Shown here: piece by piece, positions 4,129 through 15,133 of the stretch
How positions within the stretch are numbered: position 1 is the first letter of the stretch
How the letters are laid out: each line of letters begins with the position of its first letter
IMG/VR virus record: IMGVR_UViG_3300047445_000186
Span: 1 to 64,000 of that record
Length of the DNA stretch: 64,000 nt
Strand: one strand, 5' to 3'
Position numbers and translations under genes: made by a program
Notes under the pieces: generated by a model
Databases searched by the model: none
Told to the model about the DNA's origin: nothing
The model's input: the letters and a program-made list of their open reading frames with translations, nothing else

Positions 4129-5847
4129 ATGTCTCAAATGACTTCGTTCTGGCGCATCGTTGCTCCTAAGACACGTAAGCAACTGTACACAACGCTCAGC
4201 ACGGATGCGTACGATCCACGCTCGACAGATATGTCGTCCATGGCTGCAGTTACTTGGTACTCGCAGATCATGCGCGGGCCAGGTACTCGGATGGCTTCGT
4301 ACAAGCAGTACGACACAATGGATACCGACATCGACATCTCGCGTTCCCTCGACATTATCGCCGAAGAAATGTCCGGCAAGGATGACAAGACTGATCTGCC
4401 GTTCGTGATCAAGTGGCAGAAGGAAGACAACCAAGACGTGTCTGACACGACAGTTGTGACAGTTCGTGCTGCTCTTCGTCAGTGGGCGCAGATGCAGGAT
4501 CTGAAGAAGCGCGTGTTCAGCACGGCTCGAACGATGATCAAGTACGGTGATTGCTTCTTCCGCAAGGGTTCTGACACGCGTAAGTGGACGTACGTCGATC
4601 CATCGCTCGTGATTGGTATCGAGGTTGACGAGCTCGGCACGAAGGTCGCTTATCATGTGAAGCGTCCAGCTCAACAGCAACAGCAATCGCAGATGTACAC
4701 GACCCAGCGTATGGATGACGTTGACGTCGTTCCAGCGGCTGCGATGATTCACTTCTCGATGTGTGACGACATGGGCGACTCTGCTCCGTTCGGTCACTCA
4801 GTGCTGAAGCCAATCTTCCGTGTCTACCGTCAACTTTCGATGCTTGAAGATGCGGTGATCATTTACCGTATCGTTCGTGCTCCAGAACGCCGTGTGTTCT
4901 ACATCGACGTCGGGAACATGAACCAACAACAGGTCAAGCGTTACCTCGAGTCGGTCAAGAACGAAATCCGTCAGAAGCGCGCGCCAGGAACGACTGCTGG
5001 CGGCAAGGCTGAAGTTGACGGCCAATTCGATCCTACGTCGCTCCAAGAAGATTACTTCTTCCCAGTCACGGCTGCCGGTAAGGGTTCACGTGTTGAAACC
5101 CTGCCAGGCGGCACTGAAGACTTCGGTACGAATCTACTCCGCTCGTTCGCTGAGAAGATCTTCCGCGGTCTGCGTATTCCGACCTCGTACCTTGGCGGTC
5201 AAGAGGGTGCTGGCGCTCAGACGAACGACGGCAAGGTCGGTATCGCGTACATCGAAGAACTTCGGTTCGCGAACTTCATCACGCGTCTGCAAGACCGGAT
5301 GAACGAAATCTATGACCAAGAATTCAAGATCTACTTGAAGGTCTGTGGTCTCCGCATTGACGATGAAGTGTTCCAGGTCCGTCTGCCAGATCCAGCGAAC
5401 TTCGCGCTGTACCGTCAGGCTGCGCTCGATGCCGATCTGATTGCATCGTTCCAGAACATTCAGGAAGTTAAGTTCCTGTCGCGTCGCTTCATCTTGAAGC
5501 GTTACCTCGGTCTGACGGATGACGAAATCCAGATGAACGAAGTGATGATCAAGGAAGAGAAGAACATGTCTGACAACGCGATTGTGCCGATCATGCAGCA
5601 GATGTATGACGATGCAGTGTACGCGAATCGTGCCGAGATCACGGTTGACGGTGAGAACGTTGATCAAGGTGGCGGTGGTACTGACGAAGCTGGCGATCCA
5701 GGAGCAGGTCTCTTGGATAACGACTTCGAAGACAAGCCATTCGCATCAGCGCCTGATGAGTCTCCAGAGGCAGCTCCACCTGAAGGTGCTGATGAAACTG
5801 GTGCAGAACCACCAGCGGCAGGTGAAGAACCGCCAGCAGCCGGCTAA
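4129..5847 (+). CDS. portal protein (T4 gp20-like)
   Basis: LSMLEDAVIIYRIVRAPERRVFYIDVGNM, EDYFFP, VETLPGG signature motifs. Confidence 0.95.
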   Translation: MSQMTSFWRIVAPKTRKQLYTTLSTDAYDPRSTDMSSMAAVTWYSQIMRGPGTRMASYKQYDTMDTDIDISRSLDIIAEEMSGKDDKTDLPFVIKWQKEDNQDVSDTTVVTVRAALRQWAQMQDLKKRVFSTARTMIKYGDCFFRKGSDTRKWTYVDPSLVIGIEVDELGTKVAYHVKRPAQQQQQSQMYTTQRMDDVDVVPAAAMIHFSMCDDMGDSAPFGHSVLKPIFRVYRQLSMLEDAVIIYRIVRAPERRVFYIDVGNMNQQQVKRYLESVKNEIRQKRAPGTTAGGKAEVDGQFDPTSLQEDYFFPVTAAGKGSRVETLPGGTEDFGTNLLRSFAEKIFRGLRIPTSYLGGQEGAGAQTNDGKVGIAYIEELRFANFITRLQDRMNEIYDQEFKIYLKVCGLRIDDEVFQVRLPDPANFALYRQAALDADLIASFQNIQEVKFLSRRFILKRYLGLTDDEIQMNEVMIKEEKNMSDNAIVPIMQQMYDDAVYANRAEITVDGENVDQGGGGTDEAGDPGAGLLDNDFEDKPFASAPDESPEAAPPEGADETGAEPPAAGEEPPAAG

Positions 5848-5876: not shown

Positions 5877-6485
5877 ATGCAGCTGTTGAAAGAATACCTC
5901 GATCCAAGCACCACCAATCTGACCGAAATGAAGAAGGTTGGCGGCGATCTCTACCTGTCTGGCATCATGATGCAAGCAGCACTGAAGAACGGCAATGGCC
6001 GCGTCTATCCAGTGAATGAAATCGCCCGTGCAGTTCAAGAGTGTCAAGACAAGATCACCAAGGGTAACTTCATCCTTGGCGAACTGAATCACCCAGACTC
6101 GTTGAGCATCAATCTCGCGAACGTTTCGCACGCTATCACTGAGATCCGCATGGACGGTAATAACGCTGTTGGCAAGATGAAGCTCTTGAACACGCCAGCT
6201 GGTAACATCGCAAAGGCTATCATCGAAGGCGGCGTTCGTCTTGGTGTTTCCTCGCGCGGTACCGGTAACGTGAACGAAGGCGGCGAAGTTGGTGACTTCT
6301 CGTTCGTCACAATGGACATCGTTTCTACTCCATCGGCTCCAGATGCATTCCCATCGGTAGTGCAAGAAGCTATGGGCTCGAAGAAGATTCTCTCGCTCGC
6401 TGAAGCTGTTGTTGTCGATCCAAAGGCACAGAAGTTCTTTGCGGCTGAGATCAAGAACCTGATCGCATCCCTCACAAAGAAGTAA
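5877..6485 (+). CDS. prohead core protease (T4 gp21-like)
   Basis: NGNGRVY, GELNHP (catalytic His), VSH, NTPAG, GVSSRG (catalytic Ser), DIVSTPSAP. Confidence 0.93.
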   Translation: MQLLKEYLDPSTTNLTEMKKVGGDLYLSGIMMQAALKNGNGRVYPVNEIARAVQECQDKITKGNFILGELNHPDSLSINLANVSHAITEIRMDGNNAVGKMKLLNTPAGNIAKAIIEGGVRLGVSSRGTGNVNEGGEVGDFSFVTMDIVSTPSAPDAFPSVVQEAMGSKKILSLAEAVVVDPKAQKFFAAEIKNLIASLTKK

Positions 6486-8602: not shown

Positions 8603-9856
8603 ATGCAACTCAATGAAAACTGGACCGAAACCAAAGAGGCTCTGCTCGAAGGCCTGACCGGTTCGAAGAAGACTCTCGCTTCGACGCTGATGGATAACCA
8701 GCGTCGCCACCTCCTGGAAACTGCAGGCGCCACTCAAAACGGCACCGGCGACATCCAAGGCTTCCAGAAGATCGCGATCCCAATGATCCGTCGTATCATC
8801 CCAGGTACGATCGGTACGGAACTCGTCGGTGTTCAGCCACTCACCGGCCCAGTCGGTCTGGCTTACTCCCTGCGCTTCGCTTTCGCTGAAGCCCTCGACG
8901 TCGCTGGCACAGGCAACGACATCGGTGTGAACGACGAAGCATTCTCGAACAACGTTTCGAAGATGAAGCGCTTCTACTCGGCAAACCTGCTCACCGGTTC
9001 GGTTGGTACGTCTGATGGTTCCACGACCAATGACTCCACTGGTCTGGAAGCTCAAGGTGGCCGCACGATGCGCCTGCAAGTTCTGAAGCAAACCATCTCC
9101 GCTGGCTCGCGTAAGCTGCAAGCGAAGTGGACTGTTGAAGCTCAGCAAGACATCGGTTCGCAACACGGTCTGAACCTCGAAAACGAACTGGTCGCTGCTC
9201 TGTCGGCCCAGATCGCGCACGAAATCGACAACGAAATCCTGACCGACCTCGTCGCTCTGGCTTCGACCGTCGCTACGTACGACTTCGCAGCTCCAGTCGC
9301 TGGCATGGCTCCAGCATTCATCGGTGATCGTTACGCTGAACTCGGCGTTCTCGTGAACAAGATGGCAAACGAAATCGGTGTGAAGACACGCCGTGGCCCA
9401 GCTAACTGGCTGGTCGGTTCCCACCTGACGACGTCCCTCCTGCAGTCCGCTGCAAAGTCGGTGTTCGCTCCAGCAGTCCAAGGCTCGTTCGCTGACCCAG
9501 TCGGCAACAAGATGGTTGGTACTCTGAACGGCCAACTGAAGGTGTACTCGTACCAGTGGGGTCTGGGTGATGCATGGACGATCGGTTCCGGCGCTGCTAC
9601 GGCAGACTCCGCAGCTGGTGAGCAGATTCTGCTCGGCTACAAGGGCGGTTCTTCGGAACTCGACTCCGGCTACTTCTACTGCCCATACGTGCCACTCATG
9701 TCCTCGGGCGTGATCATGGACCCAGCAACGTTCTCGCCAGCAGTTTCGCTGATGACCCGTTACGGCAAGGCAACGTTCACGAACGCTGCTACGTCGCTCG
9801 GTAACTCGGCTGACTACTACGCACGTATCCTCGTCAAGAACGTTGCATTCAGCTAA
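8603..9856 (+). CDS. major capsid protein (T4 gp23-like)
   Basis: IRRIIP..VGVQPLTGPVG, SRKLQAKWTVEAQQD, EIDNEIL, GYFYCPYVPL, LMTRYG. Confidence 0.96.
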   Translation: MQLNENWTETKEALLEGLTGSKKTLASTLMDNQRRHLLETAGATQNGTGDIQGFQKIAIPMIRRIIPGTIGTELVGVQPLTGPVGLAYSLRFAFAEALDVAGTGNDIGVNDEAFSNNVSKMKRFYSANLLTGSVGTSDGSTTNDSTGLEAQGGRTMRLQVLKQTISAGSRKLQAKWTVEAQQDIGSQHGLNLENELVAALSAQIAHEIDNEILTDLVALASTVATYDFAAPVAGMAPAFIGDRYAELGVLVNKMANEIGVKTRRGPANWLVGSHLTTSLLQSAAKSVFAPAVQGSFADPVGNKMVGTLNGQLKVYSYQWGLGDAWTIGSGAATADSAAGEQILLGYKGGSSELDSGYFYCPYVPLMSSGVIMDPATFSPAVSLMTRYGKATFTNAATSLGNSADYYARILVKNVAFS

Positions 9857-9894: not shown

Positions 9895-9923
9895 AAGGGA
9901 CTCTTCGGAGTCCCTTTTCTTTT
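9895..9923 (+). terminator. intrinsic terminator with UUCG loop
   Basis: AAGGGACTC-TTCG-GAGTCCCTT followed by T-tract. Confidence 0.85.
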
Positions 9924-9955
9924 GTGTGTCATCTTGCCCATTGAAAATTTCGATC

Positions 9956-11507: not shown

Positions 11508-12722
11508 ATGAAAATTGCTGTCATTGGGGCTGGAATCGCTGGTACGCTTTCCGCCTATTTCTTGGCCGAGGATGGCCACCAAGTTACTGTCATTGATCGA
11601 GAACCTGAGCCCGCGATGGCTTGCACTCGAGCGAATGGCGGTCAAATCTCTGTCTGCAACGCCAGCACCTGGAACACGTGGTTGAACGTGCGCAAGGGTT
11701 TGAAGTGGCTCACACAAGCAGACGCCCCTCTCCTGATTCGTCCGAAGCCTGAACTCGCGAAGCTGAAATGGCTCGCTGGTTTCATGCGGCACGTCGTGAA
11801 CGGCACGCACGAGGCGAACACGATCGAGACGATCGGTCTCGGCCTGACATCACGTTCCTTGTACGAGAAGATCGCTGAGCGCGAAGGTCTGCAGTTCGAC
11901 AAGTCGAGCACTGGCCTGCTGAATGTGTACACGAGCGACAAGTCGTTCGAAGACGCGCTCGATGAGAACTGGATGTTCGCGTACGCTGGTCTTGAGCGGA
12001 AAGAGCTCACTACTGAGGAGGTGATAGCGCTTGATCCAGGTCTGAAGAACTTCAAACATCTCGTTGGCGGCATCCTGACCGAGTCCGATTGGACGGGCGA
12101 TCCGCACAAGTTCTGCCAGCAGCTCAGAACGATTCTCGAGTCACGCGGTACCCAGTTCCAATTCAATCAAGAGATCGAGCTTGGAACCGTGCACGATGCG
12201 AACACATTCACGCAGAACGGCCATGACTTGCTCGGCCTGTATGATCTGGTCGTCGTCTCGAACGGTCATGAGATCAGCCAGTTCGCATCGCACCTTGGCG
12301 ACTCGATGAATGTGTACCCTGTGAAGGGGTACTCGATTACGATCGATGTGGAAGGTGATGAAGCTCCTCAGTTCTCGCTCCTTGATGACGATCGCAAGAT
12401 CGTCTCCTCGCGTCTTGGCGATCGCTTCCGCATTGCCGGAACTGCTGAGCTCACTGGTGTGAATTACGACATCCGCCGAGATCGAATCGATCCGCTTTTG
12501 AACTGGGTCCGTGAGAACTTCCCGAACGTTCGAACAAGCACGTACAACCCGTGGGCCTGCCTCCGCCCAATGAACTCGAACATGATGCCAATCGTTCGTC
12601 GTTCCAAGAACCCGCGCGTCTGGTACCATGGCGGTCACGGCCATCTGGGCTGGACCCTTGGTGCGGCAACTGCGAATCAGCTCGCCGAGAAGATTCAAAT
12701 CGCCGTGACAGTGGGTGGCTAG
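11508..12722 (+). CDS. dadA: D-amino acid dehydrogenase (FAD-dependent, DAO family)
   Basis: IAVIGAGIAG FAD motif, RANGGQIS, YPVKGYSIT, RIAGTAEL, WACLRPM, GHGHLGWTLG. Confidence 0.85.
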   Translation: MKIAVIGAGIAGTLSAYFLAEDGHQVTVIDREPEPAMACTRANGGQISVCNASTWNTWLNVRKGLKWLTQADAPLLIRPKPELAKLKWLAGFMRHVVNGTHEANTIETIGLGLTSRSLYEKIAEREGLQFDKSSTGLLNVYTSDKSFEDALDENWMFAYAGLERKELTTEEVIALDPGLKNFKHLVGGILTESDWTGDPHKFCQQLRTILESRGTQFQFNQEIELGTVHDANTFTQNGHDLLGLYDLVVVSNGHEISQFASHLGDSMNVYPVKGYSITIDVEGDEAPQFSLLDDDRKIVSSRLGDRFRIAGTAELTGVNYDIRRDRIDPLLNWVRENFPNVRTSTYNPWACLRPMNSNMMPIVRRSKNPRVWYHGGHGHLGWTLGAATANQLAEKIQIAVTVGG

Positions 12723-12772: not shown

Positions 12773-12851
12773 TTCAGTATGCTCTGCATCCTAGAACTCG
12801 GGTGCACCCTGCGCACTGATCGTTACAATTGATCTTTCAAGGAGAACAAGA

Positions 12852-13052
12852 ATGACAACTTACGCACGGAAGGTGCTCGACGTAGCAGTCCACAATCTGG
12901 ATCGCTCGATCGAAGTACAAGAAGCGTCTATCAAAGAGCTGCGGAATGATCTTGGCATCGCAGAGAACGATCTGCAGAACAGCTACAACCACCGCGTCGA
13001 GCTGATCAACTCGATCATCGCGCTCGACGCTCTGAAGCGAGATGCTGTCTAA
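12852..13052 (+). CDS. hypothetical coiled-coil protein
   Basis: 66 aa, AGGAGA RBS. Confidence 0.65.
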   Translation: MTTYARKVLDVAVHNLDRSIEVQEASIKELRNDLGIAENDLQNSYNHRVELINSIIALDALKRDAV

Positions 13053-13596
13053 GATCACGATCCCGTTCATTAGGAAGATCATTCCTAGTGTGATCGCGTC
13101 TGAACTTGTCAGTGTTCAACCGCTGACAGGCCCCGTAGGCGAGATCTTTTCGATCCGCCATAATTTAGAACTTTACTTTGGACCAGGAACAAACCAAGCC
13201 ATGATGAATATCCGCCAACGCTCTGTGAACGTCAATCGTCTCGAGCTGCTCGAGAAGCTCCGCGCCAATCTCGCTGTACATCGCGCCGAGTACGAAACCG
13301 CTCTGAGCGAGTACAAGCAACGTCTGATCGACGACCTGAAGCTTGCTGTGAAGAAGGTCGGCAAGGTCGAGAATCCACTCGAGCTGAAGAGCTTCCGATT
13401 CGCTCTGCCATTCCCACAGGATTACTCCTCGCAGTACGAGGAAGTGATCGACATGCTCGAGATGTCGGTTGATGAGAACATCAATCTCGACTCCGAATCG
13501 TTCAAGGCGTACCTGAAGAACGAGTGGTCGTGGAAGGGTAACTTCGAAGCTTCCGCCGCGATGTACAAGTCGGTCGGCTCTTCGCTCTCGCTGTAA
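13042..13596 (+). CDS. major-capsid (Gol-region) peptide fused to a 132-aa conserved phage domain; possible internal start at 13201
   Basis: residues 4-39 are 24/36 identical to MCP 8768-8875; CAGGA RBS before ATG 13201. Confidence 0.7.
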   Translation: MLSKITIPFIRKIIPSVIASELVSVQPLTGPVGEIFSIRHNLELYFGPGTNQAMMNIRQRSVNVNRLELLEKLRANLAVHRAEYETALSEYKQRLIDDLKLAVKKVGKVENPLELKSFRFALPFPQDYSSQYEEVIDMLEMSVDENINLDSESFKAYLKNEWSWKGNFEASAAMYKSVGSSLSL

Positions 13597-14615: not shown

Positions 14616-14701
14616 CCCACGTTAGGGACTACCGATCGTAACACCCGACTTAGAATAGTCATTCCTCTCCAGTGTCTCAAGACACATTTATTGGAGAGAA
14701 A

Positions 14702-15133
14702 ATGACTGAAAATACTTTAAAGACTGATTGGGTTCAAGACATCGCAGCAATGCACACCAAGTTCGGTGTGAACACCGTTGTTCGAGGTCTGGACAAAGAG
14801 AAGCTCTCGAAGTTCCTGCAGTTCCGCCTGGATTTCCTTCAGGAAGAACTGGACGAAGCGAAAGAAGCTCTGGCATCCGGTGAAGTCGATCGTGCAGAAG
14901 ACGTGGTTGACGCCATGATCGATCTGTGTGTCGTCGCAATCGGTACGCTCGATGCTTTCGACGTGAATGCGTATGAAGCTTGGAATCGCGTGCACGGCAA
15001 GAACATGGAAAAGACTCCTGGCATCAAGCCAGAACGTCCGAATCCGCTGGGTCTGCCAGATCTGATCAAACCAGCTGGCTGGACAGCTCCTACACACGCG
15101 GACAACGTCGGGATTCTTGCACGGGTTTTCTAA
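14702..15133 (+). CDS. MazG-like / PRA-PH family nucleoside triphosphate pyrophosphohydrolase
   Basis: LQEELDE...EDVVDAMIDL acidic helices, VHGKNMEK, LIKPAGW. Confidence 0.8.
   Translation: MTENTLKTDWVQDIAAMHTKFGVNTVVRGLDKEKLSKFLQFRLDFLQEELDEAKEALASGEVDRAEDVVDAMIDLCVVAIGTLDAFDVNAYEAWNRVHGKNMEKTPGIKPERPNPLGLPDLIKPAGWTAPTHADNVGILARVF

Follow-up and report, generated by a model that had tools for sequence, protein, structure and literature searches.

The window analyzed here is a 64,000-nucleotide stretch comprising the first 64 kb of a 331,776-bp viral contig (IMGVR_UViG_3300047445_000186), which derives from a giant phage with a T4-type head module composed of a portal gene (4129-5847), an S77-type prohead protease gene (5877-6485), scaffold-like genes, and the major capsid protein (MCP) gene. 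By MCP similarity, the nearest isolates are jumbo phages of Ralstonia, Xanthomonas, and Stenotrophomonas at about 50% identity. Between the head and tail-fibre genes lies an ORF that begins with a copy of part of the MCP, and the features relevant to this locus are as follows.

8603..9856 (+), MCP gene (417 aa, T4 gp23 family; Pfam Gp23 E 2e-83, phrog_138), the parent of the copied segment
8768..8875 (+), Gol region of the resident MCP (aa 56-91), nearly invariant among the orthologous MCPs of relatives
9895-9916 (+), strong intrinsic terminator (9-bp stem followed by a T-run) right after the MCP gene
11508-12722 (+), 404-aa FAD-dependent oxidoreductase of the DAO family (Pfam E 5e-57) inside the island between the MCP and tail-fibre genes, an unusual auxiliary gene for a phage
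12822..12829 (+), GTTACAAT motif 23 nt before the first ATG of the operon, a candidate non-late promoter or operator
12852..13052 (+), 66-aa ORF with a strong SD (AAGGAGA) before it
13042..13596 (+), long ORF (184 aa plus stop) with the MCP-derived tail, a linker, and a phrog_34511 domain
13051..13158 (+), Gol-region copy (aa 4-39), a paralogue of MCP aa 56-91
13159..13200 (+), variable linker (aa 40-53) whose 3' end holds an SD-like AGGA (13185-13188) for the internal start
13201..13593 (+), the ancestral stand-alone protein (here called gene X, 131 aa), predicted to be a folded alpha/beta domain
14672-15133 (+), MazG/PRA-PH-type pyrophosphohydrolase gene

A two-part ORF downstream of the capsid gene

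A preliminary description of this DNA reported that 13051-13158 encodes a peptide matching the MCP at 24 of 36 residues, and this observation was reproduced in every number. The two translations are 24/36 identical with no gaps (BLASTP E 2e-14 for the pair), nucleotide identity is 70/108 (65%), and 14 of the 24 identical residues use a different codon. Identity falls to background immediately on both sides, and a tblastn search with the MCP against the whole window recovered the copy (E 2.8e-11) but no other paralogue. The claim that only this segment of the capsid is copied therefore holds for this phage. The ORF is uninterrupted, and since the identical fused gene is present on three contigs from three samples, it is not an assembly artefact.

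We found that the ORF consists of two unrelated parts. The first, aa 3-56, matches positions 5-53 of the 376 in the Pfam PF07068 (Gp23) profile with a score of 39.2 bits against a gathering threshold of 24.4 (E 7.2e-10). Since only about 50 profile positions are covered and the HK97-type capsid fold is not, this is a fragment and not a capsid protein. In a phmmer alignment, aa 7-39 align with T4 gp23 aa 96-128 (PDB 6uzc chain numbering), confirming that the copy is the positional equivalent of the T4 Gol region (residues about 94-122), as had been proposed. The second part, aa 54-178, matches positions 1-121 of the 126 in phrog_34511 (E 8.7e-36), a family of unknown function. We found 68 close homologues of gene X, and a profile search of a representative library recovered 4035 clusters at 50% identity, making this a very large phage family.

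Gene X normally stands alone, as in Pseudomonas phage pf16 (gp172), Ralstonia phage RP13 (ORF198), DLP_6, and most metagenomic relatives (about 131 aa). These proteins begin M(M/L)N(I/L)R.(R/Q/K)SVNVNR, which is exactly where the window has ATGATG at 13201. AlphaFold predicts a confident fold for aa 54-184 (pLDDT above 90), with a long helix plus a small alpha/beta unit, while aa 1-53 are predicted to be disordered (pLDDT about 40). To determine whether the domain resembles a protein of known function, we searched by sequence and by structure. There was no Pfam match to the domain, no PDB sequence match, and no Foldseek match in PDB below E 1, while Foldseek against BFVD returned only the pf16 homologue (TM 0.85). 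The paper describing pf16 contains no virion proteomics for gp172, and a DNA search with the locus against isolate phages gave no match.

The ATG at 13042 has no good SD, but the stop of the upstream 66-aa ORF (13050-13052) lies 8 nt after it, an arrangement typical of translational coupling. On the other hand, the internal RBS and ATG at 13201, also noted in the preliminary description, are real and conserved, with AGGA located 12 nt upstream in the window and GGAG or AGGA retained 8-13 nt before ATGATG in all fused relatives. A short and a long isoform are therefore both likely, although translation of the long form is inferred only from evolutionary constraint.

Distribution and evolution of the tail

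To determine how widely the fusion occurs, we examined the DNA upstream of gene X in relatives (handles beginning with P or L denote the relatives and their loci, and W the copy in the window). MCP-derived tails precede gene X in frame in at least eight other metagenomic lineages, namely P0007 (L019, L020, and L023), P0008 (L021), L025, P0071 (L137), P0079 (L135), P0018 and P0029 (L009 and L054), P0011 (L017 and L018), and L024. Pfam Gp23 E-values for these tails range from 5e-8 to 8e-3, while the most decayed tails score nothing, and the linker differs in length and sequence in every fused relative. In P0007, the tail also keeps the first 17 residues of the MCP, which shows that it began as a 5' fragment of the MCP gene.

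Absence or frameshifting of the segment in close relatives had been named beforehand as evidence against a functional peptide, and this criterion is met only in part. The closest relatives of the gene (L007 and L022; 70-71% identity) lack the segment cleanly, with an acyl-carrier-protein gene abutting ATGATG, and most of the family has no tail. However, in 36 loci, every VQP[ML] relic within 260 nt upstream of gene X is in frame (9 distinct cases in frame and none out of frame), despite many insertions and deletions among the tails. On the gene X tree, the tail-bearing forms fall in at least three places within one subclade, while P0079 belongs to a more distant clade with about 44% identity in the domain. 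In the group that includes the window, gene X lies 3-4 kb downstream of the MCP gene, whereas in the P0079 phage it sits among T4-like early genes (PNK, Y05D, and SNase) with no MCP gene within 10 kb upstream.

The neighborhood of gene X also contains recurring genes. An acyl-carrier-protein gene (PF00550) lies directly upstream of gene X in several distant phages (L007:~4340-4570, L017:9717-9950, L018:77-310, and L002:2762-3001, which is RP13), forming a conserved gene pair, and its place in the window is taken by the unrelated 66-aa ORF. The MazG/PRA-PH-type pyrophosphohydrolase travels with gene X in several lineages (L025:1250-1795, L021:1934-2416, and L137:2347-2823, in addition to the window), as does a SIMPL-domain protein in L021, L025, and L137.

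We next asked whether the tail is under selection, using Nei-Gojobori counts on its 25-33-codon core. Among W, L025, L019, L021, L137, and L135, pN is 0.23-0.42 against a saturated pS of 0.50-0.94, with Fisher p below 0.02 in 12 of 15 pairs and best values of 5e-6 to 9e-6, although the core is short and the lineages are related, so that the p-values are not independent. Core pN is about the same as that of the folded domain in the same pairs, while shuffled codons give a pN of 0.71. In contrast, L009/L054, L017, and L024 compared with the others give pN of 0.45-0.66 and pN/pS of 0.5-1.0, these three lineages show neutral decay (pN/pS 0.7-1.0), and L009 against L017 retains only 11/31 identical residues in the tail but 106/131 in the domain. 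Together, these findings show that the tail evolves under purifying selection in six lineages, including this one, and is decaying in three. The decay, the clean absence from the closest relatives, and the lack of a tail in most of the family indicate that it is dispensable.

These data bear on the possibility that the tail is a neutral relic, in which a chance in-frame partial duplication of the MCP 5' end persists because it does no harm and the real product is the 131-aa protein made from 13201. The conserved internal start, the weak SD at 13042, the decay series, and the clean loss in the closest relatives are consistent with this view, as is the GC3 of the tail (0.53), which is lower than that of the rest of the same ORF (0.76) and of neighboring genes (0.61-0.67), the codon usage of the copy being clearly de-optimised relative to the MCP. 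However, with synonymous sites saturated, a neutral peptide would have lost its similarity, and the frame data and the persistence of the tail across gene X clades that are only about 44% identical also disfavor this explanation, which we consider unlikely.

Since the MCP gene is only 4.2 kb upstream on the same strand, and since the copy shares E and L (ELV..QPL) with its own MCP where the sister MCPs have D and M, we also considered whether repeated recent capture or gene conversion from the resident MCP keeps the copy similar without selection on the copy itself. However, the copy compared with its own MCP has a pS of 0.67 (pN 0.24), which is no lower than against foreign MCPs (0.60-0.69) and higher than between orthologous MCPs (0.24-0.53), so the duplication is old, with no sign of recent gene conversion. 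In addition, ELV and QPL are common states in other T4-like MCPs, and the fragments share derived residues that no MCP has (ITIP and GEIF in W and L025, and S before VQP in W, L025, L017, and L135), although the cognate MCPs of L025, L019, L021, L135, and L137 are not on the contigs. Maintenance by gene conversion is therefore very unlikely, and the shared residues favor one old origin followed by trimming and loss, while independent capture is not excluded for the distant P0079. The three glycines of the MCP segment are replaced in the copy, and the same positions vary in the other tails, as expected once the capsid fold no longer constrains them, although these replacements could change binding.

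A second, independent case was found in an AT-rich phage contig (L038, Ga0102851_10006905) that carries an un-extended gene X at 1526-1924. Here, a stand-alone 82-aa ORF (5943-6191, +; P0069) in a non-structural region begins with a Gol-region copy of about 42 aa (Pfam Gp23 E 3e-6, above the gathering score) and continues into an unrelated 45-aa tail. A tblastn search of isolate phages with the tail of this ORF and a scan of viral contigs found no relatives, and word-indexed protein searches with this ORF or with the window's tail alone returned only the queries, which reflects the sensitivity limit of the index and is not evidence of absence. A scan of viral contigs with the window's tail returned 80 loci, of which all non-self loci were ordinary MCP genes, most cut by contig ends, and no further detached fragments were found. 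One MCP ORF of a T4-like aquatic phage (L129:1199-1786) ends after 196 aa without reaching a contig end, which could be a frameshift or an assembly error.

Promoter-type motifs and possible roles of the peptide

The preliminary description placed the copy in an early-gene island, and we found support for this at the level of motifs only. The exact T4 late promoter TATAAATA is absent from the window, but a variant, STAAATA, occurs 20 times against 2.5 expected, with 19 copies on the + strand (for example at 1203, 5844, 7596, 9955, 15156, 22187, 29705, and 34312). It lies just upstream of the portal-side, protease, scaffold/MCP, tail, and other structural genes and is probably the late promoter of this phage. 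One copy follows the terminator after the MCP gene, at 9955, but none lies between 9962 and 15155. Instead, GTTACAAT, which has 8 exact copies in the window, all intergenic (including 10920, 11495, 12822, 50669, 50695 on the - strand, 53352, and 57557), lies before the oxidoreductase gene (11495), the gene X operon (12822), and the gp32-like, uvsY-like, and nrdA genes. It is often paired with an inverted partner, ATTGTAAC, and is a candidate early or middle promoter, or an operator.

Altogether, our analysis shows that an old partial paralogue of the MCP N-arm/Gol region, which began as a 5' fragment of a gp23-type MCP gene fused in frame to gene X and has since been trimmed, is kept in frame, evolves under purifying selection in this and at least five other lineages, is predicted to be disordered, is joined to the domain by a variable linker, retains the ancestral internal start, and lies in an operon with a non-late promoter-type motif, while its mechanism, including any EF-Tu binding or decoy activity, is inferred. 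The interpretation given in the preliminary description, namely selection on an early EF-Tu-binding peptide or a decoy for capsid-sensing immunity, is thus supported in part, as selection on the peptide rather than recent recombination debris is borne out, whereas the two proposed activities remain hypotheses.

In T4, the Gol region binds EF-Tu domains II-III, inhibits its GTPase, and is the most conserved part of gp23, and Kleanthous and colleagues proposed that gp23 of T4-related phages interacts with the EF-Tu of their respective hosts (PMC3014915). Since EF-Tu is the only partner known, we tentatively favor a model, held with less than even confidence, in which the tail works as a detached short linear motif that would reproduce, away from the capsid, the binding activity of the nascent MCP's most conserved segment. 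The tail would thereby tether the gene X domain to EF-Tu and the translation machinery, or occupy that site, before or independently of capsid synthesis. EF-Tu binding is known only for T4 gp23 and E. coli, however, and the trait is accessory, a pattern that fits a host-dependent benefit.

Alternatively, the tail may mimic the MCP epitope recognized by a capsid-sensing defence (a Lit-type protease with EF-Tu, Avs7/Avs8-type STAND sensors, or CapRel-type sensors), such that, made before the capsid, it would titrate or dead-end the sensor while the attached domain would hinder activation. The patchy distribution with repeated loss, which is typical of arms-race genes, and the non-late promoter class are consistent with this possibility, as is the fact that MCPs are common immune triggers and that one MCP sensor, Avs7, even incorporates EF-Tu (bioRxiv 10.64898/2026.01.04.697583). 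Replacement of the conserved glycines in most fragments could also separate binding from activation. On the other hand, the Gol peptide alone is the activating cofactor for Lit (PMC3014915), so an early plain copy would be expected to trigger suicide rather than prevent it, EF-Tu is far too abundant to be titrated, no defence gene, sensor, or host is known for this phage, and our literature search found no published example of an MCP-fragment decoy. We therefore regard a decoy role as doubtful.

A third possibility is that the tail reproduces the part of the MCP N-arm that faces the scaffolding core and portal inside the prohead, so that the fusion protein would be carried into the head as an internal or ejected protein or would modulate assembly. 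In T4, the gp23 N-terminal region up to L106 is disordered, lies inside the unexpanded shell, and probably contacts the scaffold, while Met98 contacts the portal whiskers (PMC9546572), and the position of gene X between head and tail-fibre genes in this lineage is compatible with such a role. However, no STAAATA motif precedes the operon (evidence from motifs only), no [LI]-x-E prohead-protease site occurs in aa 1-53 (assuming T4-like specificity for the S77-type protease), the P0079 gene lies far from head genes, and most family members work without any tail, making this explanation unlikely. We also considered whether the copy is a remnant of a lost gp24 gene but set this aside, since no other Gp23-family sequence is in the window and the tail also occurs far from head genes.

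The Gol region is the only part known to bind a host factor (EF-Tu), yet why the phage keeps an EF-Tu-binding, Lit-triggering segment has remained a question since 2000. A copy of just this segment, removed from every capsid-fold constraint and still held by purifying selection, argues that the peptide probably has a function of its own outside the capsid. The natural tails from several lineages, the matching tail-less isoform, and the decayed versions, which can serve as controls, offer a simple handle on that function. If the target proves to be EF-Tu or a capsid sensor, this would be a new type of phage host-manipulation or counter-defence module built from a structural gene. A broader reading, which we consider possible but unlikely on present evidence, is that T4-type phages have detached the most conserved segment of their capsid protein and keep it as an autonomous, non-late-expressed peptide module, fused to a small effector domain in several lineages and standing alone in at least one, that would act on EF-Tu or on immune sensors that read the MCP-EF-Tu interface (Lit-like or Avs7-like). 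This would mean that the Gol region has a capsid-independent function that benefits the phage.

Comparison with known systems

The Gol region and gene fusion by partial duplication are both known, whereas our literature search found no description of detached Gol-region or MCP N-arm paralogues, and what is new here is a capsid fragment kept by selection on a non-structural protein. Phage-encoded mimics and decoys against sensors, such as DSAD1 against DSR2 and Ocr, share a possible logic in which a phage protein occupies a host sensor or host factor, but no case found in our literature search uses a fragment of the phage's own capsid protein. T4 internal proteins with an N-terminal capsid-targeting sequence (CTS) likewise carry a short N-terminal peptide on an otherwise unrelated protein that could address it to the head interior, but the tail described here has no [LI]-x-E cleavage site after it and no late promoter motif before the operon, and it derives from the MCP rather than from a scaffold-binding CTS. 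The pf16 gp172 and RP13 ORF198 proteins share the phrog_34511 domain and its start sequence but have no N-terminal tail. The gp24 vertex protein of T4-like phages is, like the copy, a duplicate derived from the MCP gene and encoded downstream of it, but gp24 is a full-length paralogue with a complete HK97 fold.

The closest systems include the Gol region of T4 gp23 itself, the cofactor of the e14 Lit protease, for which mutagenesis reportedly defines 13 critical residues within a 20-aa core (Copeland & Kleanthous 2005). The copy shares with it the core pattern IP.IR+..P..IA.(D/E)LV.VQP(M/L), which is the most conserved part of the MCP family. Here, however, the region is detached from the capsid protein, fused to a non-structural domain, placed behind a non-late promoter-type motif, altered at its glycines, and evolving separately.
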